The notes under the pieces were generated by a model that saw only the letters and a list, made by a program, of their open reading frames with translations, was not told the DNA's origin and searched no databases. From Paragordius varius (Eukaryota; Animalia; Nematomorpha), in contig OZ176051.1 of the NCBI GenBank assembly GCA_964247055.1, forward strand, positions 14,012,001-14,076,000: a stretch of DNA of 64,000 bases. Reading direction: 5' to 3'. Both the position numbers and the translations under genes were made by a program. Shown piece after piece: positions 1 to 57,830 of the stretch (its first letter is position 1; every line of letters begins with the position of its first letter).

Positions 1-336
1 TAATTTTGAAAGAGAATTATATAAAATTAATAATGATTTTATCCTAATATATGACATGATGATTTAAAGCAAATATTTGAAGGGAGGTCAATGAATTATG
101 AACAGGCTGATGTTGAGAATAGGCGCTTGAAGATAAAGTGGAGAGATATAATAAATAAGGAAATGAAACAGTTGGTTAGATTAAAATATTGATAAAAATG
201 AGGGTAATGACCACTTTAATAACTTTAAAATACCTATTTTTTGAAAATTTTTTATAAATATTTAAAATCCGGGGCCCCTCAACTATGGCGCTCGCTGCAT
301 CAGCCGCCTTTCCCCCGCCCCCTAGCTGCGCCACTG
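1..336. mobile_element. Right part of a non-autonomous hAT element (paralog of 38172-39410)
   Basis: Ends in ccccctagctgcgccactg followed by tttgaaca, the same terminus and flank as at 39410. Confidence 0.75.
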
Positions 337-3215: not shown

Positions 3216-3414
3216 TATTTAAGTATATGTTATAACTCGTATCTTAAATATTTTCCTACTCACCCAATACCAATCCATTATTATGGCCCACATCTGTTAA
3301 ATGGCTAAAGATTATTCACAGTATAAATAAAGATTGGTAGTGTTTTATTTAATAGTGCGAGATAGAAATTACATGTCTGTTGTCAATGAGATTTTTACAT
3401 TATACACATATATA

Positions 3415-3744
3415 CCATTTACAGTTCAAATTCACCCTTGAACAATTCAAATTCACCCTTAAGCAATTCAAATTCACCTTCGAACAATTCAAATTCCCCG
3501 TAAAATAAATTAGGTGTTTTTTAGGATTAAATATTACCTATATTTTTTTTATATTTTTAAAAAAAGATATTTTGTATGTAATCAAAATAATACTTAATAA
3601 ATAATAAACTTTCCAATAAAAAATATATTTAATTTTAATGATGATTAATATTAGACCGAAACGTCATACTTTATTTTTAGGGTGAATTTGAATTGTTCGA
3701 GGGTGAATTTGAATTGTTTAAGGGTGAATTTGAATTGTAAATGG
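3415..3744. mobile_element. Foldback MITE with 21-bp subterminal tandem repeats, inserted in a (TA)n tract
   Basis: TIRs CCATTTACA..TGTAAATGG flanked by TA. ttcaaattc units at 3425, 3446, 3467 and 3488 are mirrored by three units on the right. Absent from the paralogous site near 42770. Confidence 0.85.
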
Positions 3745-4102
3745 TATATATATATATATATATATATATGTTGGCCAATTCAGATTATTTTAGGCCAATT
3801 GGTAACAGTAGTGCTCAAATTTTCACCGCCATTTTTAGGTTTCAAATTTTTTTAATCGCTAATACATTAAAACAGTAAATTAGTAAATGAAATTGATGGC
3901 AAGAGAAGAAAGGGTACTCTTTTCTTATAATGATATAAAAATAGACCGACCTACGTATTCTTACCACCGAACAATTAAAGATGGTAAGTTGTAACGGAAA
4001 TTGTTTAGTGGGAAAAATCTCAGAATCTGGAGTCTTTACCTAATATATCTAGCAAAATTTGAGATCTTTTAGATGCTCATGGGCACATTGTTGGAACACA
4101 TA

Positions 4103-4376
4103 TTTAAAATTGAAATTATACGAACAAAACATAAAAATATAAAGATAAATATTTTTTTCTAAAAGACAACCATACTTTTAAAAATAATGCCCATATAAGC
4201 TACTTAGTTACCATTGTAAAAAGATTGATTGTGTTAGTTGTAATATCTATTTCACAGTCCATTTAAAACAATGAGTTATTTTGAAATAAATCAAGATTAA
4301 AAAGTATCGTTGTCTTTTAGAAAAAAAAATTTGTCTTTATATTTTTACGTTTTGTCCGTATTTTCAGTCTTTACTG
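4103..4376. mobile_element. Tc1/mariner-type MITE (TA TSD)
   Basis: ~60-bp inverted arms (atacgaacaaaac..aaaagacaac / gttgtcttttag..gttttgtccgtat) and a right end actg|ta. Empty site acacatatcttt at ~44572. A truncated copy lies at 17506-17690. Confidence 0.75.
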
Positions 4377-13587: not shown

Positions 13588-16500
13588 TTTATGATCGGCT
13601 GCAGGCGCGGAGAAGAACTTGGTATGTTCACTCCTGAGATGCGTGTACCTTTTGATTTTATAGGAAATCTTGTTTACATTCGGTGATAAATGGAATTTAT
13701 CTCATTATCTTCATCAATTTATTGCCAGTTTTATTATCCGGAAGAAATTCAATCACTCAGAATTATAATCACACATGAATTATTTCTACAGAACATACAA
13801 CTCCAAAATTTTCATCGACAATTTTATTCCCTGAGAACCATTCTTAAACATCAGTGGACCTATCATACTGATTCTTTCTATTGATTCTTATATCTCAATA
13901 CACCACCACTAAACTAATTCCTACATGGAAAGCAATAACTCTAAATAAGCTCCCGTAATTTAGCAATAAATATGGCCACCTGGAATACACGTGGCACTTC
14001 AGATAACAAATTGGATATAATAATTCGCGAGATGAAACGTTCAAACATCCATGTGTTAGGGTTGTCGGAGACGAATCTGCAACATGACTCACACAAAATA
14101 TACGACAATTACTCGTTTTATAACTCAGGCGCTGAGCTCAAACGAAATGGATGCGGTTTCTTAATATCGAATAATCTTGCCAAACATACTGATATATATA
14201 GACCTATCTCCCATCGAATTATATCCCTACGAATTAACACCAGACTCCAGGCTATAACAATATATCAAATCTATGCTCCCACGAGTGTCTCACCCGAAGA
14301 CGAATGCGAAAAGTTCTATAATGAGTTACAAATGGCTCTCTGTGAAACATCCAAGAAAGACATAACTTTCATCATCGGCGATTTTAGCTAACGATAAAAC
14401 AGACAAGGTAACTGGTGGAAAAGGCCTTGGTAAAGTCAAAACCCCCCGTGGTGAAAGGCTAATTGATTTTTGCCAACAAAACAATCTCTTTATAGCGAAC
14501 TCATTTTTCAAACAGCCTAACAGACGGCTCTACACCTGGACCTCACCGTGTCGTAAACACAGGAATCAAATAGACTACATATTGGGAATGCAAAAATACA
14601 AAAGCTCATTTAAAAACATCCGGTGCTATTCGAGTGCAGACTGCAACCCAGATCATAACCTCTTAATGGCCAAAATCAAAATAAAGCTACAACTTCCACA
14701 GCCGTTAAAAAACTTTTCCAAAACTAAATTGAACTACAAACTTATACCCGCCCATTTTACTCCAATCCTTAACAATAAATTTGAATCCCTAAAATACGAA
14801 ACATTGAACACAGATGATCTTTGGTCTACTATTCACAAAATTACCACCGAAGTAGCCAAAGAGAATATACCGCCTGCAACTAAAAACAAAAAATTTACCA
14901 TATCACAACAAAGCATCTCTAATTGAACAGAGAAGAGTAGCAAAATCCAAGGGCACTCCCCTTGAGTACAAAAATATTAATAATAACTACAAAGAAGTAT
15001 AAGATCCGACAAAGAATCTCATTATAATACAATCTGCGCTAACCTAGAGCAAGCTGCTAAACTTAATCACAACTACTTCTCTTATATTAAAGACATTCAA
15101 CCGCGCAAAAAACAAATGTACAAAGGTCATATGTCTCAATCAAACGGAAAACTTCTAACCGATAAAAAAGGAGTAATTAAACTTTGGGAAGAATACATCC
15201 AAAATTTATTCTCAAAATCAAATATAATCGCCATGAACTCTAAACAAACTTATGACTCTCCTATACTAAAAAAAGAAATTGAATGGGCCTTGAAGCATTC
15301 ATCAACCGGCGCAAAAGGATTCAATGACATCCCTACCGAGTTACAAAGGCACATTCCCATAAAATTAGTTCTTTCATTTTTCAAAAAATCTTCGATGAGG
15401 CAACATTCCCGACGGACTGGAACAAATCACTAGTGGTCCCGATATTCAAAAAGGGCGATCCTAAACTATGTGAAAAATACCGTACAATAGCATTTTTAAA
15501 TCAAACCTCAAAAGTTTTCTTTAAAATAATACAAAACCGTCTACAAACATATGTCAAACCGGAAATCTCAATGACCCAGGCAGGCTTTAGAGAGAAAAGA
15601 GGATGCCGAGACATGATCTCAAACCTTAGATGGATAATGGAATAAAACTGTAAATTCCAAAATGAGCAACACCTATGCTTCGTGGGTTTCTCTAAAGCCT
15701 TCGATACCGTTAAACATGACATTCTCTGGAAGGCCCTAAACAAATAGGAGTTTCCGATCACTTAATCAATCTCATTAAATCCATATACTCCAACTCCTAC
15801 CTATTACTTAACACCCCGCATGGCCCGACCTCTTGGAGTCCAATGAACATAGGTCTGCGTCAAGGCTGCATTTAATCCCCCATGTTGTTCAACATATATT
15901 TGGAATGTATCATGAGGGATCTAAATCTGCCAGGAATAAAAGTGGATCACACTCTGACGACTCTCCACTACGCAGACGACACGGTTATCTTAGCAAATTC
16001 ACAAACAAACCTCGAAAACAGTCTCCGAACTTTTATAAATGTGAGCAAAAAATACAATCTTACATTAAACCTCAACCAAACTAAAATATAGCATATCAAC
16101 TCCCCTCATTCCTATGACTCGCTTCGGATTAATAACGAAACAATTCAAGTAGTCAACGAATCCACATACCTTGAAAGCATTACCAACAACTCAAGCTCCA
16201 GTTCCCAAGAAAAAAGAAGACGCATAGCTATCGCCAAATGCGCTCTAGCCTCAACACTACAAGATATGAAAATTTCATATCATAACCCTTAAAACAAAAA
16301 TCCGACTAATAAACGCATGAATATTTCCTATCATGCTATACGGATGTGAAAGCTGGACTATCAAAAGTGAAGACGAAAAAAGAATAAACGCTTTTGAAAT
16401 GTTTTGCTGGAGAAAAATACTTGGTATAACATGGAAGGACAAAATAAAGAACATCGACATTGTAAATAAAATTAACGCACAAACAACGCTTCGGGGTAAA

Positions 16501-16757
16501 ATAATAAAACAAAAATTCGGTTCCTTTGGACACATTATTCGGGGCAATTTTTTGGAAAAGGATATTATGTTAGGAAAAGTAAATGGTAAGAGAGGAAGAG
16601 GACGCAGACGTATTCGCTGGGTAGACGAAATCTTATCACTTTCCAAATTGTCACTGCAAAAACTATCTCAAAAAGCTCACGACAGAACCGAATGAAGGAA
16701 GTTTTCCTACAAAATCGCTAATGGTCGATAACCGACTACAAGCTCAACATCAACAAC
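13588..16757 (+). mobile_element. Near full-length RTE-clade (BovB-like) LINE, degenerate
   Basis: Apurinic endonuclease (ATWNTR..LGLSET..QIYAPT..IGDF); reverse transcriptase (RT) (PIFKKGD, QAGFR, KAFDTV, LHYADD); C-terminus LYGCESWT..GKRGRGR; CAA-type tail; TSD atttatt/attcatt. Confidence 0.92.

Positions 16758-20198: not shown

Positions 20199-20250
<52 letters not shown>
20199..20250. repeat. (TA)n microsatellite
   Basis: Pure TA run. Similar runs at 3745-3768, 22618-22638, 23967-24017, 25535-25568, 42771-42818, 45063-45091 and 54570-54586. Confidence 0.95.
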
Positions 20251-20255
<5 letters not shown>

Positions 20256-22617
20256 AAAATGGAAAATGCTGGCTGATCTGTTTCGGAAAAACCGGTAGAC
20301 CCATTCAGATCCAAATGTTAAAAAAATACATTAATGAATGCCCGACAATAGTTTTGCCCTTTTTTGAATTAGGTCCCTAGTTCGGACCCACCCCGTTTAA
20401 AAAACGGTTTTTTTTGAAAACACAAGTCTACAAAAGTCGCGTTAAGACACCTTTCCAGAAAACGTGTGTAATTATTCGATTTTAAATATGATATTTATTT
20501 ACTTTTTTTGATTGCGCCGAGTCGGCTCGCTTTTTTAATTTTTACCCTCTTTTTACCCGCTCCCCCGTAAAATGCCATTTTTTTAAAATAATTTTTTGTA
20601 TCTATTTTTCGCCCAAAATATGAGACCGTAAAAATTCGATAATGATTCCAGGTATTCCTGTTAAAAGGCACAAATTTAAGTCAGGCGTTTCTTTGATGAT
20701 AGCTGCTGGGTAAGGAAAGACTCGCTAAAAACTGACCCATCATATCGAAATAGCGTGCTTTTGGGGTTAAATTTCAGAAAGCCTATCAGGCCATAGGAGT
20801 TCAATAGCTGCTTAAAGTATTACCCATAATAAGGCAAAAATTTTGGTCGTGCGACAATTAGCCCTTATTTAGGCCCTTCACGCCTTGAAAAATGCGATAC
20901 CATAAAATGATTTTTCAGTTTTGAGCCAATTTTTCCATAAACTGATGAGAGCATATGGAATCGATCATGATTTCAGGTATTCTCCGTAAAAAGTTCAAAA
21001 TTTTAATCAAGCGCTTTTTTTGTATCAGCGGGTAGGGAGCTACCCACCTAAAACTGGACCAATATATCGAAATGGCGTGTTTAGGAGTTTATTTTCAGAA
21101 ATCTTATCAGGCCATATAAATATAATAAGGGCCTAAAATATTACCCGTGAAAAGGCAAAAATTTAATTAAAGCGGTCTTATTAAATTCCGTTAATTATGC
21201 CGTTTAAGCCCTAAAAAATGCGCTATCATTGAACTATAATTTAGTTTTAAAGCCATTTTTCCAAAAACTGTTAAGAACATATGAAATGAATGATGCTTCC
21301 ATCTATTCCCCTATAATGGGAAAATTTTTTATCGAACGTCTTTTTTATATTAGCCTCTGGGTAGGGGGCTACCCGCCAACAACTGTGCCGCCATATCGAT
21401 ACAGCGTGACTTTGAAGGAAAATTTTAGAAAACTTATCAGGCTATATGAGTTTAATAAGGGCTTGAAATATAACCCGAAAAAAGGCAAAAATAAAATAAA
21501 GCGGTTTTATTAAATTACCCCTTAATTAGGCCCTTGCCCTGAATGCGCCCCCGTAGAATAACTTTTTGGTTTTGAGGCAATCGAATCCCACAAGAGCATA
21601 TGAAATCAATCATGATTCCAGATATTACCCGAATTAAAGATTTTATAGGTTTTTTGGTTCGCCCCTGTTTAGGGAGCTACCCACGTAAAACTGCGTAACC
21701 ATATCTATAGAGCACGCCATTGGAGCCAAATTTCAAAAATTTATATGAGTCTAATAGGAACATATGGAATCCATGATCCTGATATTCATATAAAGGCAAA
21801 TTTGCCCAACGCTTTTTTCATACCGGCCCCTGGCTAATAAGCTAGGCCAAATATTGTGCCACACTCTAGAAATTGCGCTGTTTTAGAGCTAATTTTAAAA
21901 ATCCATATGAGTTAATTAAAAGCTTTAAATATTAACCGTAACTAGGTAAAAAAAGGCAGGCGTTTTTTTATTAGCCGTTAATTTAGGGCCTTTATGCCCT
22001 AAAATTACGCCATCATATGAGGATTATTTAGTATTGAGGTATTTTTTCAGATAACCCATACGACGATGGTATCAAAGATGATTCCAAATATTTGCACTAT
22101 TAAGGAAAAGAATTTAACTCAGCGCTTTTTCCAAATAGGTCTATGGGAAGGGGCTGACCGGTTTAAAACTGAGACGCTGTACAAAAATGGCGTGGTTTTG
22201 GAGATTTCCAAAAAACTTAAGAAGCCATACGAGTTCAGTTAAGCACATTTCTGGGAATTCTTATAATATTATTCTTTCTTTTAAAAAAGACCACGAATGA
22301 TTTACTTTTTATATCCCTTCATCCCAGCTGTGCGAAAATAATTTCAAAATAATACTTTTGTCAATGATTTCATAAAACGAAATCTTATAATAAATACAAT
22401 GATAGTTTAATATAAACTTTATTAAAAGACAGTTTAAATATGGTCAATTTTGAGTAAACAATATTTGAGCCTATGCAAAAACCCGTAAAAGAATAATTAA
22501 AGTTCTTTTTATTGAATATGTTTATTATTATTTTTTTATCTCCATAACCTCTAATTATTGCAAATAAATACGAATAATTATCAGAGAGACTACGTCACAG
22601 CGAAGCAACAGGGCCAG
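20241..22617 (+). mobile_element. Non-autonomous Helitron, copy A, between two (TA)n tracts
   Basis: 5' ..tttataaaaatgg..gctggc and 3' tacgtcacagcgaagc..gggccag match copies B and C. Terminal CTAG is missing. Internal ~160-bp repeats. Confidence 0.8.
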
Positions 22618-23235
22618 TATATATATATATATATATATTTATCAAATATATATCATTTTTTTGGTTAAAAAAAATAATCAAGATGGATTGATCGATAGAT
22701 TTTTTTCCCAATAATAATAATTACTTATTCTGCCATAGCTAATTTCTTTTTAGTGTTAAATTTTAATATTATAGTATGAATAAGTATACATTGCTAGAAA
22801 GTTATTAAATCTTGCCAAATAGCATATACACACAACAAAGGGTAGTATCATTGGCTTATAGTTATTTTTTCACTTTTTACTATTATTAGCCAAAAATATT
22901 TCTCTTTGGTGTATATGCTATTTGGCAATAATTAATAACTTTCTAGCTGGCACCCAGAGTTAGAGTCCGGCGCCCTACCTACTAAACCATCACGCCTTCA
23001 ATTTCAGCTTTGACTGCTTTTACTGTAAAAGGAAAAATTCCAAAATACTAATAATTCTTATTTTTATTAAGGCACTGATGTTTGTTAAACTATAATTTTT
23101 ATTTATAAATCCATTGTTTTGGATTACAGTAATAGATATAGGCTTATTCGATTATATATTTTACATTAATAAATCCTACTTTACTCAATATTTTTTTATT
23201 ATTTAGATATTTTATTCTTAATACTTACGTATTAG

Positions 23236-36200: not shown

Positions 36201-37454
36201 TACCCAGGGTTGCTAATAAACCAATTTATATTACATTTGATAATATTTTTCCCTTACACTCCTATCACCATATCACCCAGAAACATAGTCAAATAATGTA
36301 AGTCTATTTATTAAATAAATAAACATATATAAAAAAATTTTTTCTATCATAACAAGCGAATTTTTTATTCAGATGTTTGTTTGATTATTATCGTTTCCTT
36401 TACAAATAAAACTGGTTGCGCATTTGTCACATCAAATTTTTACATCAGTTATAAAAGGGTTGTTTTTTATTAATATTATTTATTTTTTACATTTCATTTC
36501 CAAAAAAATAATATGAGCCAATTTGCTTTACGGGTAGCGTTTACCTTGATTTTGTGTATCATTCCAACCTTTTTATCCATTAAGTCAAAAGATCACGGAG
36601 GTAACATTAGAAAATTTATTTCCATTCATTTTAGATATTGATTGCAGTCAAGCGATCGAAAAACACTGTCAAAATATAAGTAAAAGTGAACCTGATCAAC
36701 TCCCAATTAATTACAGAACCTTTATTAAAGATTTAAGTAAATTAGCTAAAATAGCGCATAATTTTTAAACTTGATTGATATATCTTATTATATTTGCACT
36801 TTTAAAGATAATCATAAACCAATATCCACCAATCGATACCTCTCTAATGTTAAAGCAGTGTACGATTCTTGTCTTGCCTATCAAAATAGTACCCAAGGTA
36901 ATAATAATACATTAGCTATCGAGGAGATTCGAAGATTCCTCAATAAGTATGGTAGCTTAAGTCAGAATAGCTATGTAAATGCAACGCTCACGAATGATAC
37001 CAAAAATTATGATGCAATTTTAGAGCTCTTGAGTGATAATTTCATGTTAGTCCCAATGAGTTTTGATTACTCAGTTCATGAGCAAAACGATTCGTCAAAC
37101 GAAACAATGCCTAAACTGATTGTTAATGAGGTCTACATGTATTACTTAAATATAATAACGGACCCAAAGATGTTTGAAGATGAAATTAAGATGCTGAAAT
37201 CTTTATATCTAGCAATGGGCGGCATCCAAGAAAATTGGCAGGCCCTGAATGTTACCTACAATTATCTAATTAACGTTATCATGGCACAGGTTTAATCAAT
37301 TGCAATAAATTTTTTTACCTAAACAAAAAAATTATTGCGATTTTTTTCATAATGTTTAAATATACTTGCGTATGTTGGTAAAAAAAGTTTAGCTTAATAA
37401 AATTAAGCGCATTTTTGTTTGATATCTTATATACGTCCTATTTATTTTGATTAG

Positions 37455-37595
37455 CACCCGGATCAAGAGGGTTCGGGGATGGAGATAAATATTTCTGGAT
37501 CTTCTTCAGGTTTTCCATACTCAGGCACCAGCCATCCTCTTGAGGAGGAAAATTCTGGTTTAACCTCAGGATCCGCTAGTGGCTCAGGATCAGGA
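37455..37595 (+). CDS. Phase 0-0 Ser/Gly-rich exon of the M13-like gene
   Basis: ttttgattag| HPDQEGSGMEINISGSSSGFPYSGTSHPLEEENSGLTSGSASGSGSG |gtatat; 141 nt, compatible with the flanking phase-0 exons. Confidence 0.7.
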
Positions 37596-38171
37596 GTATA
37601 TAAATAGATATTTTAAGTATAATTTTGGTTCAAAATGTAGCTATATAAATCTTTTATTTTAAAAAGTACCACTTTCAAAAAGTATTAAATATTATAAAAT
37701 GTTGGCTAGTATATTGCATTCTAAGGATAAATCCGAATCTAATATCTACTACCAGGATTCAAAGAGCCTTTTTTAATTAATCACAAGTAGATGATAAAAA
37801 ATACACTGTTTAAATGATTATATAGCTTTGATATTTGTATATTTTAATAATAATAATTTTTTTTCAAGAAATGGGAAAATATAACCTCTATATGTTATAA
37901 CAAATTTTTTTTAAATAATAACATATGATCAGCTTGTTTGGCACATAGAGAAATGGTGATTTTATTTAATAAAATATTATTAAAAAACTCGTGTACACAT
38001 GTTAAATATAGAAGTTTTACTTTAAAAATATATATATTTTCGCCATCAGGCACCATATTAAATTATAAAATATAATAGTATTCCCTATTACATAATTAAC
38101 CCGTTGGCTAAAATTATCGCATATATTTGCATTTTATATGCTACACATAAAATATTGGAGCCATTTAAACA

Positions 38172-39410
38172 CAGAAGCGTGGCTTAAATTTCTGGCGCAT
38201 GGTCCATGAATTCCACGCTCTTTCCCTCCCTGCCCTTTGCATTTTAAAAAATCAAATTCAAACCGTAAGCGGCGAAATGTGGCTCGTCATAAACAGAAAC
38301 ATGTAAAAAAATATGTTTCTATTATTTCTTTGAAAACGACGGCTTGCTTAGCAAATGTATCAGTAATAAAAAATAATATTAACTTTTGCGTGAAAAGTTC
38401 GATTTAGTTAAATATAAATAGTGTATAAAAGAAGTATTTAAACTGCAATCGGTGGCCCGAATCAAAGATTTTTTTTGAAAAAAAGGCTTGCGTACGAAAA
38501 TAGAGTGGCAATCATTAGGTATTAAAACATTAAAAAAAATCCCAAAAAAGTTGAATATGAATTTTCATGAAAACTGCATCCCTAGACATAAATATATCAC
38601 ATCTCATATATGATTCCCATTTATTTATAACTCTTCACTTATCAATATTGATTTATAAAATATACAGTATGAGTATGTATCATTGCTAGTTTTTCATTGA
38701 TTATGCCAAATAGCATATGCAGCAAAGAGAATTATTATTGGCTAATGTAAGAAGTGAAAAAATACATTAATATTGCCCTTTGCTGTATATGCCATTTGGG
38801 AAAAAACAATGAAAAACTAGCAATGTATACTTACTCATTCTGTATATGATGGCCATATGTTAAAATATTGGTTCATTATGTACATTAAAATTATTTTAAA
38901 TAGTTGTATTAAATTAAATATATAATCATATTTGATACCTCTCTAATGGATATAGAATAACGAAAAAAGATAAATTTTATTTACGAACAATAGAAAAAGA
39001 AAAAAGGCACTTATAATATCAATTTTAAATTTAAAGGATTTTGTCATGATGGGTGGCATTAAGCAAGCAATATATATAATTTTGAAAGAAAACTAATATA
39101 TAATTAATAATGATTTTATCCTTATATTGGACACTCTGATGATTTAAAGCAAATATTTGAAGGGAGGTATTATGAAAAGACTGATGTTAAAAAAGGTAGG
39201 CGCTTGAAGAAGAAGTGGAGAGATATAATAAATAAGGATGGAAACAGTTGGTTAGATTAAAATATTGATAACATTGAAGGTTATGACCACTTTAATAACT
39301 TTTAAATACTTATTGTTTAAAAAAAGTACAAATTTTTAAAATCCGGCGCGTCTTAACTATGGCGCTCGCTGCATCAGCCGCCTTTCCCCCGCCCCCTAGC
39401 TGCGCCACTG
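38172..39410. mobile_element. Non-autonomous hAT element with a nested MITE (38665-38842)
   Basis: Termini cagaagcgtggct / agctgcgccactg; 8-bp TSD tttaaaca/tttgaaca. Confidence 0.8.
38665..38842. mobile_element. Palindromic Tc1/mariner-type MITE
   Basis: ta|cagtatgagtatgtatcattgctagtttttcattg ... caatgaaaaactagcaatgtatacttactcattctg|ta. Confidence 0.85.
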
Positions 39411-41182
39411 TTTGAACAATGATATATAATATATGTAATAAACTAATCTTATGAATATGTATCATTTAAATAGTTGTATCATAATAATAATATTAAATTT
39501 TTTGGTTTTTAAGAAAATTGGTAGCTTTCTCAATGTTATAATATAAAATATTTAAAAATGTGTGTTTTGACAAAATTTAACTCACCAGGTTATATATATA
39601 ATATGTAATAATTTATTAAAGTTTACCAAAACGACTACAACTGGAAAGTATATCAAATGCGAAAATATTGGCACCAATATTGATTGGGAAGTAAGAACTT
39701 TTATGTAAACTCAATATTTTAGGAACTCAAGAATATTAGTGATCCCAATGTGATATATCAAGTAAAATATAATTGTTAATCTTTTTTATCAAAAAAATGG
39801 CTAGAAAATAGCGTTTGCCGTTATGAGAAAGCGCTGGAATAAACATGGAATCCTATGCAAAGAACAAATAAAATTTAATGATGAACAACCCAAATTTACC
39901 AAAATGTATGGCTCATTTGTCGGAACTTTGTTGAAGGGAAACAACATGTAAGTGGGATAATAAGAATGACCGGTAAATAAATAACTCTTTCAATTACTTG
40001 GCCCAACTACAACGCCATTTTTACTAATTCAGTATTGAAAAACGCTATTTCTAAACTATATCTTATTCATAGAATGTTAAAAGATTTTCTAATCCTATAT
40101 GTCGCAAATATGTTGGCACCATACACCGTCCCTGATTTTAGAGATCATCAGGCGAGGTTAAACGAAAGCCAAAATTATTTTAACTCATATAATCTGGAAG
40201 CTAGGTGTGTAAATATGATATCATCCGAGGAAGTGGATTTATCAAAATACTCAATTTATCTTAGTCAACAAAATTTTTCCGTTTCTGAAGTAATAATGTT
40301 TTTTTCTTACATTATGATATAAAGCACTGTTAATTTTTGTTCTATAGTTTGCTTTATTGATTTTTATAACAGTTACAAAGTATGGTAAATAAGTATCTCA
40401 ACAAAACCGATTTCCACAAACGATATTACGCAAATGATTCAGTAAATTTTTTAATAGCTATTTTTGCAGGAATTTAGTGAAATCGTATCAAACATGTTCG
40501 TCCAGCAACATAATTCGATAGAAATGGTATGCATATATCATTAATTTTTTCAATTTATTATTGAGTTTTGTGTTGGGAAGTTAGTTTGTAAACATTAATA
40601 TCTTTTCTAAAACATTTACGCCTTTTTTCTACTTAGTAAGTTTCAAGTATAAGGGTTGTAATGTGTATTATTATTCATTAATAACGGGTCTTATGTAATA
40701 AAATTGAACACTAATAGTACATGAAAAAGTTTTTCTTAGACTTTAAATTAATATTTTTATTTTCAATAAAAATGACATAAAACCGTGCGACACAAAAAAA
40801 GACTGCAAATTACACAATTATAGACTTTTTTTTAAATGTAATACACCTCAGATTACACCTTGATTTCGAATTCGCCCTATTAATTATTATAAAAAATTAC
40901 CTATTTTTTGTTTTAAAAAGATAATTTTGTTAATACAACATAATACAGAAAAAAATGATAAATGCCATAAAAATATATCATCTCAATAAAAATGAGTAAA
41001 ATTAGACCAAAAACACATAATTTACTGTGATATTTAAATATTTTGAGATATTTGAGTGTTTAAGGGTAAATTTGGAGTGTCAATTTTATATACTGTGCCG
41101 ACAACTTCCGTAAAGTTAATCTCTCATATACGTATGTTTGTACATGAAATTGGTCAAACATTTAAAATTTATGAGAAATATA

Positions 41183-42209
41183 TCAGGTGTATTCATTTTC
41201 ATCGTTTTTGGTTTAAAATGGTAATTTTAAAATGATATCAATTATTTTATTAATTCGAAATATTGTTCATCGGCTTCTACACATTTCACTCATCTCCAAA
41301 TTAGTAAATGAATTCCGCCGAAAAACTGATTGTATTTTACGGTACACCATTCGTCAAGTCATTTTCCAACGTCTTCAAAATTAATGTGCTCATCAGGGGT
41401 ATACCCTATATGGCGCAATGTCATGAGACAGTAGATGCGAAAGAATTTTCGATCGAAGCGACTTCGATATGTCTTTCACTGGTTTTGCTGTGCGAGACGG
41501 ACCCTTGTCATGAAGAAAAATCTTTTTATCATATCTTCTGGCCGATTTCGTTCGTTTCTAAAATAATGTGGTTTAAATTAATCATCTGTTGGGGATGGCG
41601 TTGTAGTATTAACGGTTTCACTGTTCAAAGGTAAACCCAAAACCGCTCGAGTCTTATCAGACACAGTGCATGGTCTACTGGCCAAGCGATTCGGTGATGT
41701 TGAGGGACTGACTTGGCAAAGTTAAACCAAAGATTTTTTTTGCTTTGTATTTACAAAGTAACGCATCCTACCCATACCAATTCGCCGCTAAATTGATCTT
41801 TTTTGTGACGTTGAAGCAAATGCACTTTGCCATTTTCGATTTGACGTTCATTTAAAGGGTATGGGACTCATTCACCGAGTTATTAATCTTTTTTTCCGTA
41901 GACATCGATTGATTGTTTTTTGTGATATATGTGATTCGTTCCCATATATAATTGATAGAATATGCTTATCAGAACTTTCTACCAGCGATAACTTTCACAG
42001 CTTTTTTTTCTAATGGCCATGCGCGCCGCAAACGTTCTTTTTCAGACTCAAACGACATTATTAAATACGCTAGTTTTAGGTGAAATCAATTTGTGTGTGT
42101 TTGTAACATAATGTCAGATGAACAAAATGGATCTGTATCAAATTTATTGTCTGCTTTATTTTGCAGACATCTTCCTATAGTTAAACCGTTAATAATTTAT
42201 GACACCTGG
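41183..42209 (-). mobile_element. Degenerate mariner (paralog of 2093-3215)
   Basis: ta|tcaggtgt ... gacacctgg|ta; same intronic position as in copy 1. Confidence 0.8.
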
Positions 42210-42766
42210 TATTTAAGTATATATTATAACTTGTATCTTAAAAATTTTGAACAAATCATCTTTTTCATACAATTCTCATATTTCAGTACAACCCATTATT
42301 ATAACCCACATCTGTATTTGAATAACTAAATGTTATTCACACTATGCATAGATTGGTAGTGTTTTATTTATAATATTGTGAGATAGTATATGCAGCAAAG
42401 AGAAGAATTATTAATAGCAGTAAAAAGTGAAAAAAATATACGCCAATAATAATACCCTTTTTTTTATCTGGCATAATTACAGTCATGTATATGTAGAATT
42501 GACAAACATTCGTTTTCAAATGATTATAATTTGTTTTTAATTGTTTTGATGTTTGTTCAACATGTGCATTTTTAAGCCTTATGTTGAAAGTTGACATAAA
42601 CATCAAAACAATTAAAAACAAATTTTAATCATTTAAAAACAAATGTTTGTTAATTCTACATATACATGACTGTAATGAAACACTAGAAATATATATCTAC
42701 ACATACTGTAATTACATGTCTATTGTCAATGAGATTCTTTATTTTATTAATTATATTTTTACAGTA

Positions 42767-42823
<57 letters not shown>

Positions 42824-42921
42824 GCCAATTCAGATTATTGTAGGCCAATCGGTAACAGTAGTTCTCAAACTTTTTCACCACCATTTTTACAGCTACAATT
42901 TTTTTGATCGCTAATACATTA

Positions 42922-44310
42922 TGGATTAAATTTTTTGGAGCGTGTATTTAATAAAGTTGTTTCAACGTATGAAATCCCGGTTGAATGGAAGGAAAGTTTA
43001 ACTGTGCCTTTATTTAAAGGAAAGGGTGATATAAATGAATGTAGTAACTATAGAGGGATAAAACTTATGTCGCACACTATGAAATTGTTTGAAAAAATAA
43101 TTGAAAAGCGAATCAGGAAAATGATATCTATAGAATGAAATCAATTTGGTTTCATGCCAGGAAAGTCAACAGTAGATCCTATACATGCGGTTAAGAGGTT
43201 GATTGAAAAACACATTGAAAAAAAGAAAGAATAACACGGGGTTTTGATTGATATAGAGAAGGCGTTTGACAGGATTCCTAGAGAAACTATTTGGTGGAGT
43301 CTCCGTCGTAAAAAAATGCCAGAAAGTTATATTAAGTTGTTACAAATAATGTACGAATCACACACCTCCAGGATTAAAACTCCACAAGGTTTATCAGAGC
43401 CCTTTTCAATAAAGCATGGAGTCTACCAAGGCTCATCACTCAGCCCCTTATTGTTTATAATTTGTATGGACGAGGTAGCCAAGGTTGTTAATGTGAGTTC
43501 AGGATGGTACTTAATGTATGCAGATGACATAATCATCTTGTCTGATTCATTAATTGAGTTAAAGCGAACGGTAAACAGATGAGTTGTTATGCTGGATCAA
43601 TATGGTCTGAAAGTAAACAAAGCAAAAACCGAACTTATTACTTTTGGGGGTCCACAACATGAAATGGTAGTTGATGATAGTTGGGTTCTGAAGGGTAAAG
43701 AAAGTTGCAAATATCTGGGAGCTATGTTAAGTGCAGATGGTTCGTTAACTGACGATATTAATTTAAGAATAAAGAGCAGCTGGGTAAATTAGAAGAAAAT
43801 TTCGAGCGTATTATGCAATCGAAATATTGATGTTAGAGTGAAAGGTAAGATCTACAGTTCAGTTGTCCAGCCCTCAATGATGTATAATTCACAGACATGG
43901 GGTGTCAAAAAATCTGAAGAGAGACAATTTAACGTGACTGAAATGAATATGCTCAGAATGATGTGTGGGGTAACTAGAAAGGACAAAATCGAGAATAGAT
44001 TTATTCATGGGAGCACAGATATTAAACCAATAGTGGAAAGAATGTCAAAAAATAGGCTACGTTGGTTCGGGCACATTGAAAGGAGAGATTCTAATTATAT
44101 TGCAAAAATAATAGATGGTTATATAGTTGAGGGAAAACGAGGACGTGGGCGACCTAAAACAAAATGGATAGATACAGTAAAAAGAGAGCTAGCAGAATAC
44201 GAGCTTAATGCAGAGGACGCCATAGATAGAGTTTCATGGCGAGACAGGTTGTATAACATGACCGCTCTCACGAGTGAAAACATGTAATGTAATAATAATA
44301 ATAATAATAA
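42922..44310 (+). mobile_element. 5'-truncated RTE-clade LINE with (TAA)n tail
   Basis: RT motifs (PLFKGKG..NYRGIKL, DIEKAFD, QGSSLSPLLF, LMYADD), C-terminus RLRWFGH..GKRGRGRP; TSD taatacatta (42912-21 and 44311-20); empty site at 3860-3869. Confidence 0.95.
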
Positions 44311-45057
44311 TAATACATTAAAACCAGTAAATTATTAAATGAAATTGATGGCAAGAGAAAAAAGGGTACTCTTTTCTTATAATGATATAAAAATAGACTT
44401 GATCTACATATTTTACCACCGAACGAGAATGGTAAATTGTAGCGGAAATTGTTTCGTGGGAAAAAAAACCCTAATCTTGAGTCCTTACCTAATTCTGCCA
44501 AGGGAGCATATCTCATATGTAGGTAATCAAACTTCGAGATTTCTTTGATGCTTATGGGCACATTGTTGGAACACATATCTTTTTTTACAAAATATTCTAT
44601 AGTGGTCACCAAAAATTTTTAAAGAGTCAAAAAAATATTTTTCATATCTCAAGGGCCATAATAAGATAAAATTAAAATCGATGTTTAACACAGGGCCATA
44701 AAAAAGCAATTTTAGGGCCGCGGTTGCATTACTGATCTATAGTCTTACCAATTTACAACATAATCCAAGAGTTAATGGATCAAATTAGTAGCACAGTACT
44801 GGTAAAGAGGGTCAAACAATATACTCTTTGGTTTTCTATTTTCAAAAATCAATTAATTTACATTGAATAATAATTATTTGTCATTCAGATTAGACCAAAT
44901 GCAAGAGCTAAATCCTTTTTACCTAACATGCATAATCTGATGAATGTACGACCCACACATTTTTTCAACGATGCCATACCCAGGTAGGTTGTTATTCCAT
45001 AATAAAAAAATGAATTTTAAATTTAATATTGGAAAAATTATTTTCTATATATAGACA

Positions 45058-45098
<41 letters not shown>

Positions 45099-47203
45099 GT
45101 TTGATGCCGAGAGTAAGCTCTAAGCCTGGGGCTACATTTGTGTATGATCATCTTAAAATCACTATTATAATAAAATGCAATAATGTTCTTACTAATTTAT
45201 ATTCTTTAATATAGCAACAATTACATGTTTGGTTATGAACTTCTTCCCATCAGTAATTAATCTAAAATTATGTGACTATATAATATATTTAATCCATTTT
45301 ATAGAGCAGTCAAAATGCAATGGAACTTTTTGGGACATCGATCTTTTACAAAATGCAATAGAATTAGCAACGGTATTAAATTTTTAAATAATACTAAAAA
45401 CTGGCCTCCCTTCCCATGATTTTTTAATTTCCTATATTTTTTTTAAAAAATAGATTGCTTCTTCTTCTAATCAGAAAGAAGCCATTGATATGACTCAATT
45501 GCAATTGGAATCTATGTTGGAGGTATGTGTTTCTGTATTTATTACTGTCAAAAAATATGTTTCACATATTGTTTCGGATTGTATAATAAATCGTTATTAA
45601 TTTAAATTAGGAGTATTGTGAAAATCCATACATGGATCCAGAATTGACAAAAAATTTATTTTTAACGCTTGGATCTATGAAATCAGCCGAACGAAAATTC
45701 TCGTGCAGACCTCTTAAGATATCCCATGCAAATTGCACTATTGAATAAAATTAAATATACTATCAACTTTTATCAATATACTATTGCTATTGGGCTTTCA
45801 TGATTATTAATTATCTATTTTGTAATTATCAAAAATAAATATTTCAGCATCTATTATATTTTAACGTTTTTGTACTTATTGAGTTTCTCTACAAATTCCT
45901 ACATAATTGATAAATTATGAATCGGGGTATGAATAATCACTAGATGGAATTTACTTCAGTTTGATTGTATCACCAAATATGAACATTTTGCGAGCGCCAC
46001 TCAAAAAGAAATTTTATTAAATTTAGTGTTAACCGAATCTAAAATTATTTTTAATCTTCCCAAATAAAATTTTTAATTACGGTTTTCCGATTAAAACAAA
46101 AGATCACACTATTTTTTTATCAAAACAATAAAAAATTTAAATTAGCAAATTATATCATGAAATAAAGCGTTAAAAACTATATATAAATAGATCGGGTATT
46201 ACAGTATGGGTGTGTTAAAAGCTGTTTTAAACTTTTCTAAAATATAAAAATACTGAAATGTGCATTTTATTTATCAAAGTGTCGGGTTCACAATCTACAT
46301 TTTCGGTTATTTCCTAAGGTTCTGAGTGTTTTTTATATAAATGTGTCAATAAATATAAGTTACGGCCGTAATCTATTTCCTTATGGATAGTTATTAATTT
46401 GAATTTAGATCAGGTGGGATCCTATAAATAGGGATTTTAAAAAAGATTACAATGAAAGACATGAAACCTCAATTTCTTCAAAAAACTTTCTGTTATATGA
46501 ACCAACATTTCTAAACTAGTGATTGTTATGTTTTTTATATTGATTACGTTTTAACATATATTATTTCACATATATAATATATTTTGAATTAATTTTATTG
46601 TGAACATAAAAATTGTATAAAACATTAAAATCCACATAAAATCGACAATCATTTAAGGCATGTCCTGATTTGTATCCAGATTCAAATCTATGTCATAATA
46701 CTCTGCTTAACGAATTGATCGGTAACCATTGAAATTGACAATTGATGTTGTTTACAAGGCACGTGGCACAGGTTTGAAAGCGCTAGGTACATCAAGGTAA
46801 ATATTAGTTTTGTCGTTTTGCCATAAAAGCTTGGAAGATATCAAAATGGCAAATACTATCTGATTAGTTGATATGAAACGTCACCAAGATTGGCCGATTG
46901 GTATATGTTAAATCATTGGTACTAAAAATGGCATTATATCTTTGAGCTTTTTCGAATCGTGTTTTTGAATGCGACATGCACATCGCATATTTTTGGAGAC
47001 CATGCTCCTTTAATATGAATTTTGGTGTCAAAATAGTGAAAGTTTTTTATTAATATTAAAGTTCATTTTTAAATAGGTCCACAACACTTGCGCAATTTAT
47101 CCATTTTTGGACTAAAATGGTAAAAATATCCCTGCTTGAAAAAAATCAAAATAATTACAAACTAAATCTTGCCGTAATTGCATAGATAATATTTATGATA
47201 TAA

Positions 47204-49932
47204 ATAGCTGGCCCTGTCACGCTTCGCTGTGACGTAGTCTCACCGATAATAACTCCTAATAATTTGCAATAAATAGAGGTAATGGATATAAAAAAAACAT
47301 ATTTAAAAAAAGAATGTCTATAATTATTATTACGGGTTTTTACATAGGCTTAAATATTGTGTACTCGAAATTGACCATATTTTATTATTAATATTCAACT
47401 ATTATTGGATTTGATTTTCCTTTAACGACAGGGTTAAAAGTTTTATTTTAAATAGTGTTCACACAGCTGGAATCAAGTGATATAAAAAGTAAATCATTTG
47501 TGGATCCTTTTTAAAGGAAAGAAAAAATCCCCAGAAATGTGTTTAACTGATGTCGTATGGCTTCTTAAGTTTTTTGAAAATTAGCTCCAAACCACGCCAT
47601 TTTTGTATGGTGTCTCGTAAACCGGTAGCCCCCTACCCATAGACCTATATGGAAAAAGCGCCTAAAATATTTTGTCTCTATAAATATTTGATATCATCTT
47701 TGATATCATCTATCGGGTTTTTCGAAAAAATACCTCAACAGTAAATATCGTTATATGATGGCGTATTTTTAGGGTAAAAGCCCCAAATTAACGATTAATA
47801 ATAAAAACGCTCGACCTTAATTTTTACCTAGTTAAGGGTAATATTTCAAGCTTTTAATGAGCATATGGCTTCATGAATTTTCTGTAAATTAGCTCCAAAA
47901 CAACGTAATTTCTATATAGTGGCGCAGTTTTTGGCGGGTAGCTCCTCACCCAGAAGCAGGTATAAAAAAATAGTTGCGCAAAATCTTTGCCTTGATAAGG
48001 GGAATATCTGGAATTATTATGGATTCCATATGTTCCTATTAGTCGCATAGGTTTTGTAAAAATTTAGCTCCAAAGTGCTGTATGATGATGCAGTTTTAGG
48101 CGGGTAGCGCCCTATCCAGGGGCAAAAAAACGCTCAATTTAAATTTTTGCCTTAATTTGGGTAATACCTGAAATCATGATTGATTACATGTAACGAATTT
48201 TCGAAAAATTGCCTCAAAACCAAAAATTCTATGGTGACGCATTTTTTAGGAGGGCCTAATAAAGGTGTAATTTAATAAAACCGCCTTACTCAAATTTTTG
48301 CCTTTTTACGGGTGTATAAAAAAGCGTTGGGAAAATTTTTGCCTTTATATGGGAATATCTGAAATTATCATGGATTCCTAATGTTCCTATTATACTCATA
48401 GGTTTTCTGAGATTTGGCTCCAAAGGCATGCTGTATCGATAAGGTGACGCAGTTTTACGCGGGTAGCTCTCTAACCAGGGGTGAAACAAAAAAAACGCTC
48501 GATTAAAATTTTTGCCTTAATTCGGGTAATACTCGGAATCATGATTGTTTCCATATGCTCCTGTGGGATTTTCGAAAAATTGCCTTAAAACCAAAAAAAG
48601 TCATTCTATGGTCGCGCATCAACGGCCTAATTAAGGGGTAATTAAATTAAACCGCTCTACTTAAATTTTTGCCTTTTTACGGGTAATATTTCAGGCCCAT
48701 TAAACTCGTATGGCCTAATAAGTTTTTTAAAATTTGCCTCCAAAGTCACGCTGATATGGTAGCGCAGTTGTTGGCGGGTAGCCGCCTACCCAGAGAACAA
48801 TATAAAAAAGACATTCGATAAAATTGCCTTTATAAGGGAATACCTGGAATCATCATTTATTCCTTATGTTCTTAATAGTTTTTGGAAGAATGGCTTCAAA
48901 ACTAAATAAATCAATGATAGCCCATTTTTTAGGGCGTAAAGGGCCTAATTAAGGGCTAATTTAAAAAAACTGCTCAACTTAAATTTTTGCCTTGGTAATA
49001 TTTCAAGCCCTTATTATACTTATATGGCCTGATAAGTTTTTTGAAAATTAACTCCTAAACAACGCAATTTCGATATGGTAACGCAATTTTAGGGCGGTAG
49101 CTCCATACCCAGAGGCTGATACAAAAAAGGCGCTTGATTAAAATTTTTGCCTTTTTAGGAGAATACCTGGAATCATGATTGATTTCATATGCTCTCATTA
49201 GTTTTTGGAAAAATTGCCTCAAAATTAAAAAATCATTCTATTGCGGGGCATTTTTAGCCCATGAGGGGCATAATTAACGGCTAATTTTATAAAACCGTAC
49301 GACCTTAATTTTTGCCTTGCGGGGTAATATTTTAAGCACCTATTGAACTCATATGGCCGGATAGGTTTTCCAAAATTTAGCCCCAAAGTCACGCTATTTC
49401 GATATGACGGGTCAGTTTTTAGCGGGTATCTTTTCACCCAGCACCCTTTATAAAAGAAACGCAAGACTAAAATTTTTGCCTTTTAATAGTGAATACCTGA
49501 AATTCTCATTGTATTTTTACGGTCTCATACCTTGGACGAAAAATAAAATCAAAAAATTATTTTTGTGGACTTTGTTTTTTATAAAAAATGGCATTTTACG
49601 GGGGGAGTGGGTAAAATGAAGGCTTAAATTAAAAAAACGAGCCGACTATGTTCGACGCAATCGAAAAAAAGTAAAAAAAATATATTTGAAATCGAATAGT
49701 CCAATACGTTTTCCTGAAAATTGTCTCAAAGACACGATTTTTGTGGACTTATGTTTTCAAAAAACCGTTTTTTAAACGGGGTGCGCCCGAACTGGGAATT
49801 CAAAAGAGGGCGAAGCTATTGTCGGGGCATTCATTAATGATTATATTTTTTGACATTTTAATTTGAATAAGTCTACCGGTTTTCCGAAACAGATCACAAA
49901 GCCAGCATTATCCATTTTTATAAATATATAGA
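47204..49932 (-). mobile_element. Non-autonomous Helitron, copy C
   Basis: Minus-strand A|TC start, hairpin gtcacagcgaagcgtgac, CTA(G>T) end. Absent at the paralogous site ~7020; no TSD. Confidence 0.9.
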
Positions 49933-54841: not shown

Positions 54842-57830
54842 TCATTGAGACAATTGCAATTCGGTGATCGATTCTTCTGGTTAAAATGGTGTAAAATATT
54901 GGCAAATTACGGAATCGGATACATCTTATAGTGTGGAGGGAATCCAATTTGGCTTATTATCTTTATCGAGTAGCACTACAAAAAAACAGTGTGATATATA
55001 TGTTATGGAATAGGTATAAGGTTGGTTAATTTTGCGAAACATTTCTGCAAAATAAATTTATAGATAAAACATATTTATTAGCCCTGACGCCTTCGATAAA
55101 ATCGTGTGCACGGGTGCAACGACACACTAATCGAAATTCATGGATTAAGTCAGCAAGGCTCCAATCCTGAGCTCTACTGTCGCACAGCAGTTTGAATGTT
55201 AGCTAAAAAACATATATACTTATTTCTAAATTATTTCATTTTTAGTACAAAAAATGTATTAAAGAAACTTTCAATGAAGTGGGTGACAGTTTAGAGGAGG
55301 AATTGACAGAATCTTCGTTGGACTCTAAGCCAAAAGAATTGATTGCCGAGGGGCCCAGGATAGATTTTATTTCCTTGGGGGAACGATGATAGCATTCTTT
55401 AATGTAAGAAATACATTTATCAAAGGAAGTTTTATTGGCATGGTTTGGGTCGGTAAACTGAACAGGATCAAAAAGTTTTTTGATCAACTCTAAATTTTGA
55501 GGGTTTAGTGTTAGGTGTTTTGATGATAATGTGTTATCTGTTCGAGTAGGTTTTGCGAGTTTAACGGACTAAAAATAAATGGTTTGAAAAAAATAGGTTT
55601 ATTAAAGAATATTAAGCTATTTCGGTAAAAAATTATGACATAGTTTTAACTTTTTCATGATAATCGCAAAGGATCTCATTGAGATTTTCCTCATTTAGCG
55701 TGTCGTTAGATAGTAAAAATTCTTCCTCAAATTTGGTGACCTTTACAGAAAAAATTTAAATATAGAATGTTAATAAATAAATGTCTAAAACGTATTAAGG
55801 TGTATTGTTAACGAACATGAAAAAAACGGTTTCAAAAATGATGAAATTTTACATATTGTGGAACCAAGTAATGCGTAGCTATGCCAGAAGTAAAGACATC
55901 AATACCCTTCAATCGCTGACCCGTTAGCCCAAGGAAGATACCCAAATTATGAGGTAGTTTTGGCAAAAAATAGGAACTACCGACATCAGGAAACAAACCT
56001 ATGTAATAAACAATTTATTTTCAAAACTGAAGATGTGAGTGGTAGCTAAACAAAAAAAATATATTCTATAAAACATTTTTGGTTAATAAATGTATAAAAA
56101 ATTTCCGATGACTCGTTATAAGTAATGAGATATAAGAGTAAATTAACGAAAATAAACCGAAAATAGAATATTAAATAATTATACTAACTGATAAAACAAA
56201 GTCATATGTGAAACTGTTTGTCAATAGTAATCGCAGACTATTTTGGTCTTTTATTTGACGGTTTTCCCATACATATATCAATATAGTATAGAACACTAGC
56301 AATAAATTTCTGCCAATCGAGTTTTTTGCATTTTCTGCTATTTACTAACATTTTAACAGTAAATCTAACATTTATAATTATGCGCCTCTTTATCAAAATT
56401 TTACTAAAAATGTCTCTTTTTAGAAATAAACAACAAATGCCCATTTGTAATATATCATGCGAAGTATTTAAACTATAAAATGTTTATTAATATGTTTTAC
56501 ATATCGGACATAACCCGCGAAACGAGATCGTTTTTCTTAATTAATATATTTTTATATTAATGGATCAAAATAGCTAAAACTTTGTGTAGATGGCAATGAA
56601 TGTCTAAAAAGATAACACAAGAAAGTTTTTTCGATTAAAACAACTATTTATCGCTTTTATATAATTTAAAACAGCCATTTTTAAATGTTTGTTTTAAAAA
56701 ATTACCATCTTATCAATATTAAATTTTCTTTAGAAGGCCTATAAATTCAAAATTTCAAACACTAGAAATCAAATAGGTATTCAAAATGTTTTTTGGCCAT
56801 TATGTTATAAATTTACAGTTATATATATGCATTTTAGTATCCACTAGGTAAAAAATTATGGTAATAATTTTTATTAATAAAGAACCAAAAGCTTTTATGT
56901 AACCCTTATAATTCTATTAAAATTAATTTATGATTTTAAAATTAGTTTGTCTATGAAAATTTTTGACTTATTTAAGAGTGGAAAATTTTGACCATATAAA
57001 GCCAAGTAACTTTTACCTCAGATTGTTTTAAATGACAGACTACCGTTTTCAGTCTTTCGGGTTACGAATGATATAAAATACACGACTCTATATTTTAATC
57101 GGGGCCAAAAAATTCGATAAAACATAATAAAAAAATTCTTAGGTGTTGGGCCATTTTTTCATATACTACTATTTATGTACTTTAATGAAATGTTGTCTAG
57201 TGTATTTTTGCATAAATTTTATGAATGTTAAATAAAAAACCAATAGCCGTTTCCGGCATGGCGAAAAAGGTAGAGTCAATCGCAATCCGATGAGAACTGT
57301 GAACAGAAAGGCCCACGCCTCCACCCATAGTAATCCCATTTAAAAAGGCGATGTAAGGTTTTTTATAATTGGCCAAATCAGAAATAACTAGTATAAATGT
57401 TGGTGATTGCATTATATTTTAAGGTAAATATTCTCTTCAAAATACATTATTATTGTTAATTCTAAAAAACGATAAAAAATGATTATATTTGAAGATGCAT
57501 ATAAGGTAAAGATGATAATTTTTTTATCAATTTCATAATTCAGGGTATACTGCTTTCCAAAAGATCATCTGCCGCTTCATAATTTTTTGACTCGGATATT
57601 TGTTTAGTAACAGATAAGTATTACTAAAAGTTACTTTTAAGATCTCCTCCCGAACAAAAGGCACGACCCCCTTTACTTTTAATATATACCATATCAACAG
57701 AATTATCGGATTTCCACTTCTTTTATAATAAAGTATTGCATTACCAATAAATTTTTATAGATAAGTTGAGCCATAGGTAATGTTAAAGCATTTAAAGTAA
57801 TAACATTGTTTAATCTAATACCTCCAATTT
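54842..57830 (-). pseudogene. HIBCH: 3-hydroxyisobutyryl-CoA hydrolase, disrupted
   Basis: Exons VITLNAL (~57745-57810), 57635-57719 (AFCSGGD), ~57524-57610, 57241-~57370 ([21 protein letters not shown]), 55853-55998 (LFPDVG..GLTG.RLKG..GIATH), 55651-55740, 55269-55568 (LSPTSLK), 55079-55202 (HDFIEGVRA) and 54842-54975 (LLDKD..W.P). TAA at 54926-28 and 54881-83, RPKALN deleted, several non-GT/AG splice sites. Confidence 0.92.
56294..57202. mobile_element. CACT-terminated element, family 1, in a HIBCH intron
   Basis: cactagcaataaatttctgcc ... gttgtctagtg; internally homologous to 12354-13466. TSD not preserved. Confidence 0.75.

Follow-up and report, generated by a model that had tools for sequence, protein, structure and literature searches.

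Flies and nematodes have previously been found to possess inactive relatives of neprilysin. For Drosophila, 21 Nepl genes are reported, the majority of which encode a signal peptide and not a membrane anchor (PMC8223033); Nepl proteins such as Nepl15, Goe and Frma are predicted to be catalytically inactive, and the sequestering of peptides has been proposed as their role (PMC8223033, PMC7822871, PMC4242634). Bland et al. 2008 described thirty mostly invertebrate M13 homologues with catalytic or structural deletions or substitutions, in which the cysteine framework is generally conserved and which were found through ordinary sequence similarity (PMC2259306). Here we analyse a gene, called gene B, at positions 36513-45748 of a stretch of 64,000 nucleotides (nt) from Paragordius varius (C2:14012001-14076000, the window from here on; positions without a contig refer to it), in an animal genome of 110.5 Mb, 44 contigs and about 27% G+C. 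Gene B and its paralogs are likely to descend from an M13 (neprilysin/ECE-type) peptidase whose active site has been lost.

The family resembles the Drosophila Nepl proteins in being, as far as the present evidence goes, M13-derived, predicted inactive, probably secreted and expanded in one lineage. It differs from them in that about 125 residues with the whole zinc site are gone, in that Pfam searches are blank, and in the presence of a Ser/Gly-rich acidic exon in one clade. As in the set of Bland et al., the cysteine framework is kept; unlike that set, the family, queried with its largest exon (E3), has no match to phmmer among 1.84 billion representative proteins. Compared by sequence only, gene B shares with human neprilysin and ECE-1 the order of the landmarks, from the N-terminal cysteine pair to a C-terminal cysteine three residues before the end, whereas it probably lacks a membrane anchor, and has neither a zinc site nor any of the substrate-binding residues discussed below. 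What sets the family apart from these inactive M13 proteins is the complete removal of the core, the divergence past standard profiles and the additional Ser/Gly exon.

A predicted secreted glycoprotein encoded in fifteen exons

The gene model was built from tblastx comparisons with the paralogs (40-60% protein identity) and from direct reading of splice sites, and searches and scripts were run exon by exon. Gene B lies on the + strand, with its ATG at 36513 and a TAA ending at 45748, exactly where an earlier reading of the letters (the sequence-only reading) had placed them. That reading counted about 17 exons and about 650 amino acids; the splice sites give 15 exons, which sum to 1788 nt in frame, or 595 codons and a stop. 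Every exon has AG/GT borders. Intron lengths run from 32 to 4362 nt, with three very small introns of 34, 32 and 43 nt. The features are listed below, together with an upstream tandem copy to which several exons are compared.

1-5544, + strand: upstream tandem copy A, exons E5-E15 (the 3' two-thirds of the gene), 87% identity by self-blast
36513-36600, + strand: E1, start codon and hydrophobic leader, ending in phase 1; conserved in copy A and in the paralog on contig C3
36635-36736, + strand: E2, C-x7-C block after the 34-nt intron, both cysteines invariant in 7-8 paralogs; read as the counterpart of the M13 'PC.DFY.YAC' block
36808-37289, + strand: E3, the largest exon (160 codons), with a K.VY.SC motif, a beta-hairpin, an L.G helix and seven sequons; putative counterpart of Pfam M13_N positions ~50-200
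37455-37595, + strand: E4, 47 codons, Ser/Gly-rich and acidic, phase 0/0; an insert without M13 counterpart
39622-39690, + strand: E5, the 'IDW' exon, with an alternative in-phase acceptor that would move its start to 39649; its cysteine is invariant in the 4 copies recovered
39723-39761, + strand: E6, 13 codons, after the 32-nt intron
39805-39947, + strand: E7, 47 codons, conserved, with an invariant cysteine and tblastx matches in all paralogs; read, by motif, as the M13 'QP.FF' region
40073-40289, + strand: E8, 72 codons; putative counterpart of Pfam M13_N 263-338 ('L.NYL.W ... RW..C')
40470-40526, + strand: E9, 19 codons
44889-44983, + strand: E10, conserved in four paralogs
45100-45141, + strand: E11, the least certain exon, which keeps the phase between E10 and E12
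45215-45252, + strand: E12, a small and less certain exon
45305-45372, + strand: E13, 'W....NA' block with an invariant cysteine; its motif would correspond to M13 'W...VNAYY', the start of the C-terminal domain
45454-45522, + strand: E14, 'T.LQL' block after an 81-nt intron; read as the M13 'IDGFTP.QRFF..AQ' (QLFF) region
45611-45748, + strand: E15, the last exon, with three invariant cysteines ('YC', 'FSC', 'C-x3-stop') and the stop codon

The model is weakest at the start of E5, whose acceptor may lie at 39622 or, equally in phase, at 39649, and at the small exons E11 and E12. No paralog match to E11 passed the filters of the exon-by-exon comparison, and outside support for it comes only from copy A, where a stretch is 97% identical, and from the C3 paralog, which matches in part. 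An extra phase-0/0 exon may lie within the 2-kb intron that follows E4.

The leader has a hydrophobic core of 14 residues followed by a polar stretch and is probably a cleavable signal peptide. There are 14 N-X-S/T sites, half of them in E3, and both features agree with the hydrophobic leader and the many glycosylation sites that had been pointed out before. Ten cysteines are invariant among the paralogs, on the basis of four recovered copies for the one in E5 and of seven to eight paralogs for the pair in E2. The M13-like landmark strings quoted in the sequence-only reading are all present in the model and in the same order.

E4 has a restricted distribution: copy A carries it twice, gene B (copy B) has one, the C3 paralog has it as well, and the paralogs on C6, C11 and at C2:15 Mb yielded no match. 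The two copies in copy A are tandem, 141 nt each and both phase 0/0 (C2:14009862-14010002 and 14010433-14010573, or L002:2188-2328 and L002:2759-2899). The E4 sequences of A and B are 93-94% identical, in a duplicated block with about 87% identity. As a speculation, this Ser/Gly-rich acidic exon, gained in the C2 and C3 copies, could carry glycan chains.

Probable descent from M13 peptidases

Descent from M13 peptidases, which the sequence-only reading had proposed from motifs, is supported by matches between exon profiles, by three common introns, by language-model features and by a collinear cysteine framework. First, we cut the exons located by Pfam from the true M13 genes of the same genome, used them as a reference, and compared them by hhalign with the alignments of the family exons in a 15 x 6 matrix. 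The true exons include classes N1-N3, where N2 covers M13_N 50-200 and N3 covers 263-338. The two pairs expected in advance, E3-N2 (score 22.1, z 4.5) and E8-N3 (19.4, z 4.6), are the two best cells of the matrix, and in neither case did any of 100 column shuffles reach the score. E8 also resembles N3 of the true genes in size (72 versus 73-83 codons), and the family has its cysteines at the same positions as these genes. A full-length M13 profile of 675 columns was made from 69 bacterial PepO open reading frames (ORFs) and the M13 exon fragments of the same genome, and the best matches of E3, E8, E9 and E15 land on the cognate columns of this profile. When each exon was shuffled 50 times, a match to the cognate columns that equalled or exceeded the observed score arose once for E3 and never for E8, E9 or E15. 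The score of E9 itself is not significant, and E15 matches the C-terminal columns with z of about 2.

Second, three introns occupy the same positions, in the same phase, as introns in true M13 genes of this genome (examples of these genes lie at C4:4.035 Mb, C1:2.777 Mb and C7:9.14 Mb), namely at the end of N2, at the start of N3 and at 'AQ|vWC'. E3 ends with Ala-Gln at a phase-0 donor, which in the codon-checked true genes L031 and L033 follows Ala-Leu or Ala-Lys. The intron before E8 ends in AG, and one base later the exon opens with a hydrophobic-x-x-D/N-Y/F start, as in four true M13 genes. The intron between E14 and E15 is in phase 0, nine residues past 'QL', with a cysteine third in the next exon, and matches the intron that the true gene at C1:2.777 Mb has at 'AQ|vWC'.

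Third, the ESM Atlas features of E3 gave Peptidase_M13_N with a score of 0.97, 183 shared features and 30 of 30 matches in the family set; its recognition value, 1868, falls short of the tool's mark of 2300. Fourth, seven of the ten invariant cysteines stand at M13 places and in order (C-x7-C, Y.SC, R.C, YC, F.C, C-x3-end), and the terminal Trp of the M13 CxxW is lost. The equivalents of the Cys142-Cys410 pair, which was confirmed by Bland 2008 (PMC2259306), are invariant in the family. AlphaFold2 (AF2) predicted the same order of secondary structure for E3 as for a true M13 N2 exon: helices, a beta-hairpin (at about residues 91-118) and two long helices.

A number of results weigh against this descent. 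Pfam hmmscan of single exons of gene B, with E up to 10, gave no M13 match. Among the 41 exon matches of a genome-wide scan with PF05649 none is in the family, and a genome-wide scan with PF01431 gave no match at the gene B locus or the paralogs; between them, the two scans pick up some ten true M13 genes in this genome. Searches of the PDB with profiles (hmmsearch, E3 and E8 alignments) returned only chance rows, and an ESM Atlas search with E8 gave no usable match. E2, E9 and E15 are not significant against their cognate true M13 exons in column shuffles. Single-sequence HMMER placed E5-E7 and E10-E14 nowhere, and they are assigned by their motifs only. At the NAYY equivalent, the adjacent intron is not a common one: it is in phase 0 here and in phase 1 in true M13 genes. 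Finally, gene B has no contig in any of three sequencing runs of the species that are probably RNA.

Other searches were also blank or nearly so. A word search with E3 found nothing, hhalign against a bacteria-only M13 profile gave E of at least 0.07 everywhere, and single-sequence hmmsearch of all exons against an enriched M13 hidden Markov model showed enrichment only for E8, E3 and E15. Folded alone by AF2, E3 had a predicted local distance difference test (pLDDT) value of 51, and Foldseek and wide VIA-align gave generic helical matches only. The control, a true Pfam-confirmed M13 exon folded alone, had a pLDDT of 45.5 and did not find an M13 structure either. Since a true M13 exon fails the same search, the blank for single-exon folds carries little weight. 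The sequence-only reading had itself named a lack of M13 profile or structural hits as evidence against it: formally, this is what Pfam, the PDB and the single-exon folds returned, and the support for M13 descent stems from the profile, intron, language-model and cysteine comparisons.

Could the likeness to M13 be due to chance or convergence, in a lineage-specific family of secreted cysteine-rich glycoproteins unrelated to these peptidases? Such an origin would account for the blank of every standard homology tool and for the small exons, most of which have no measurable M13 similarity. It would leave unexplained that the two cognate pairs of exons chosen beforehand reach z of about 4.5, that three introns agree in position and phase with true M13 genes of the same genome, that language-model features identify E3 as M13_N, and that the cysteines are collinear with those of M13. 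We thus regard an unrelated origin as unlikely. The true M13 genes of the genome keep HExxH and reach up to 79 bits per exon in Pfam; the gene B family has neither the motif nor a Pfam match.

Absence of the catalytic core

The M13 consensus columns ~481-606, about 125 residues with the substrate strand FPAGILQ, the zinc ligands of HExxH and GENIAD, whose glutamate is the third ligand, have no counterpart in gene B. The missing stretch runs from after the equivalent of NAYY to before the equivalent of QLFF. It was previously thought that HExxH and ENIAD were absent and that the region after HExxH was shortened; the first holds, and the second understates the change, as the whole stretch is missing. 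At the place where the core belongs, between E13 and E14, gene B has an intron of 81 nt and the C3 paralog a gap of about 75 nt. We found no HExxH in any + frame of eight loci (gene B, copy A and six paralogs). In neprilysin, Asn542, His711 and Arg717 bind the substrate; in the family, their equivalents are replaced or show no conservation. The small C-terminal exons, which frame the deletion, are assigned from motifs, cysteines and one common intron, and not from significant alignment scores. Because the core with FPAGILQ, HExxH and GENIAD is lost, the predicted product of gene B cannot be a zinc peptidase.

This conclusion would fail if gene B were an active M13 peptidase with one or more catalytic exons overlooked in the model. 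The introns of 2.0 and 4.4 kb are long enough to conceal exons, and the model has no RNA support. Yet the search for HExxH in the eight loci, which is also the check for a missed exon that had been proposed at the outset, came back empty, as did the genome scan with PF01431 at the locus. Moreover, the corresponding gaps measure merely 75-320 nt in compact paralogs, and the phases close without an additional exon. An overlooked active site is therefore extremely improbable, and the loss of the catalytic machinery, as first proposed, is supported.

A separate cluster of exons in the genome has weak matches to PF01431 (L149-L154; C4:6823813-6892453, C2:14776339-14776461 and C7:3980863-3980994). 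These exons show 'GLGMLQ...' followed by an intact H-E-M-M/I/V-H motif, and may represent another divergent M13-like family, one that retains the zinc motif.

A family grown by duplication, with signs of purifying selection

Growth by tandem duplication had been suspected from the window and extends well beyond it. Positions 1-7024 of the window are a copy of 39077-47206 at 87% identity (self-blast), and E1-E4 of this copy A directly precede the window (L002). Genome searches with E3 and E8 and with the profiles of both, which answer the earlier call for a search for paralogs, found about 12 full family copies in the genome, and fragments, on C2, C3, C6 and C11: the tandem pair on C2, two copies at C2:15.04 and 15.07 Mb, one on C3, one on C11, and the remainder in two clusters on C6 (1.52-1.61 and 2.40-2.49 Mb). 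Their exons have AG/GT borders and are conserved at the protein level despite identities of 40-60%. The fast divergence that had been proposed is supported.

Run against the genome, the profiles of the family revealed nothing intermediate between it and true M13 genes, and only one relative, much more distant, about 80 kb downstream of the window (C2:14152660-14159212; L159:8660-9989 and L158:4934-5212). This relative has no Pfam match; with the E8 profile it gives E = 2e-5, for a small database, and its match to the E3 profile is weaker.

The copies could be decaying M13 duplicates that only look intact. Several observations fit such pseudogenes: no contig of gene B was found in the runs that are probably RNA, one intron of the gene houses a retroelement, two members of the family are reduced to broken pieces (C6:2.416 Mb and C2:13.451 Mb), and omega is about 0.7 between the youngest copies, albeit on very few changes. 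Decay is hard to reconcile with the remainder of the family, in which about twelve copies have open exons with AG/GT borders and ten cysteines are invariant at only about 40% identity. Between older paralogs the ratio of nonsynonymous to synonymous changes (dN/dS, Nei-Gojobori; E3, E7 and E8) is 0.2-0.35. Furthermore, the exons of A and B are more conserved (93-100% identical, or 87.5-100% with E10 counted in) than the duplicated block as a whole (about 87%). We regard pseudogenes as quite unlikely; the dN/dS values of the older paralogs argue for working genes, with moderate purifying selection.

The two broken fragments are an E3 with several stops (C6:2416391-2416836) and an E8 with a frameshift (C2:13451448-13451671). 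The divergence between copies A and B is itself a mosaic (40073-40289 and 44889-44983 against 1023-1239 and 4692-4780). E3, E14 and E15 are 99-100% identical, E10 only 87.5%, and E8 differs at 16 nucleotides and 11 amino acids. Either gene conversion that affected certain exons or more rapid change in the rest could lie behind this pattern.

Repeats and neighbouring sequences

The largest intron of gene B, of 4.4 kb, contains a repeat.

42921-44311, + strand: degenerate non-LTR (long terminal repeat) retrotransposon fragment (RVT_1) in intron 9 of gene B, Pfam RVT_1 at 5e-17

This fragment of 1.39 kb is in sense orientation, broken by stops and absent from copy A. In copy A, the matches to its two flanks share about 10 bases (3860-3869), which is what one would expect of a target-site duplication. 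At 13972-16695 (+ strand), in the interval that separates copy A from gene B, a series of ORFs resembles the endonuclease and reverse transcriptase of non-LTR retrotransposons. The intergenic DNA that surrounds the gene copies contains inverted repeats of about 75-80% identity (20229-22648 against 47175-49930) and internal tandem arrays. At 57197-57412 (- strand), an ORF fragment is similar to an exon of enoyl-CoA hydratase / 3-hydroxyisobutyryl-CoA hydrolase; it is probably part of a neighbouring housekeeping gene with very short introns.

A possible scaffold without an enzyme

Taken as descendants of M13 peptidases, gene B and its relatives would encode a secreted, N-glycosylated and disulfide-rich protein, which in gene B has about 595 residues and is one of about twelve paralogs. 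The parts of M13 that it would have kept are the N-terminal cysteine block, the helical N-domain and the last ~70 residues, and the retained cysteines would be those that tie the N-terminal to the C-terminal segment in neprilysin. The family has grown through segmental as well as local duplication, and its dN/dS values point to moderate purifying selection. Its members may act as non-catalytic extracellular scaffolds or binding proteins, made of M13 domain 2 and the terminal straps. The earlier description of a pseudo-enzyme fits the absence of a catalytic core; of the binding, decoy and matrix roles attached to it, none finds support here.

One could go further and see in this family a distinct class of M13 derivatives, in which the thermolysin-like catalytic subdomain was removed and domain 2, clamped by terminal disulfide straps, became a fast-evolving secreted ligand-binding protein or proteoglycan. 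The removal of the core would then probably have involved the loss of entire exons between two old introns. We put this forward as a tentative and rather doubtful possibility. If it were true, and if the animal is parasitic, the proteins could have a role in handling host peptides.

Descent from M13, the broader and likelier claim, has consequences of its own. It carries a practical warning, as an expanded family of secreted proteins, in an animal that has received little study, is invisible to Pfam, HMMER and word searches, and can be placed only by comparing profiles at the level of exons and by common intron positions. Inactive relatives of peptidases are common and mostly unexplained. Here the core would have been deleted, and not merely altered by point changes, with the rest of the protein kept under selection in some twelve copies. 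The family would thus show which part of neprilysin can stand alone, and would provide a natural minimal scaffold for the study of non-catalytic binding by M13 proteins.

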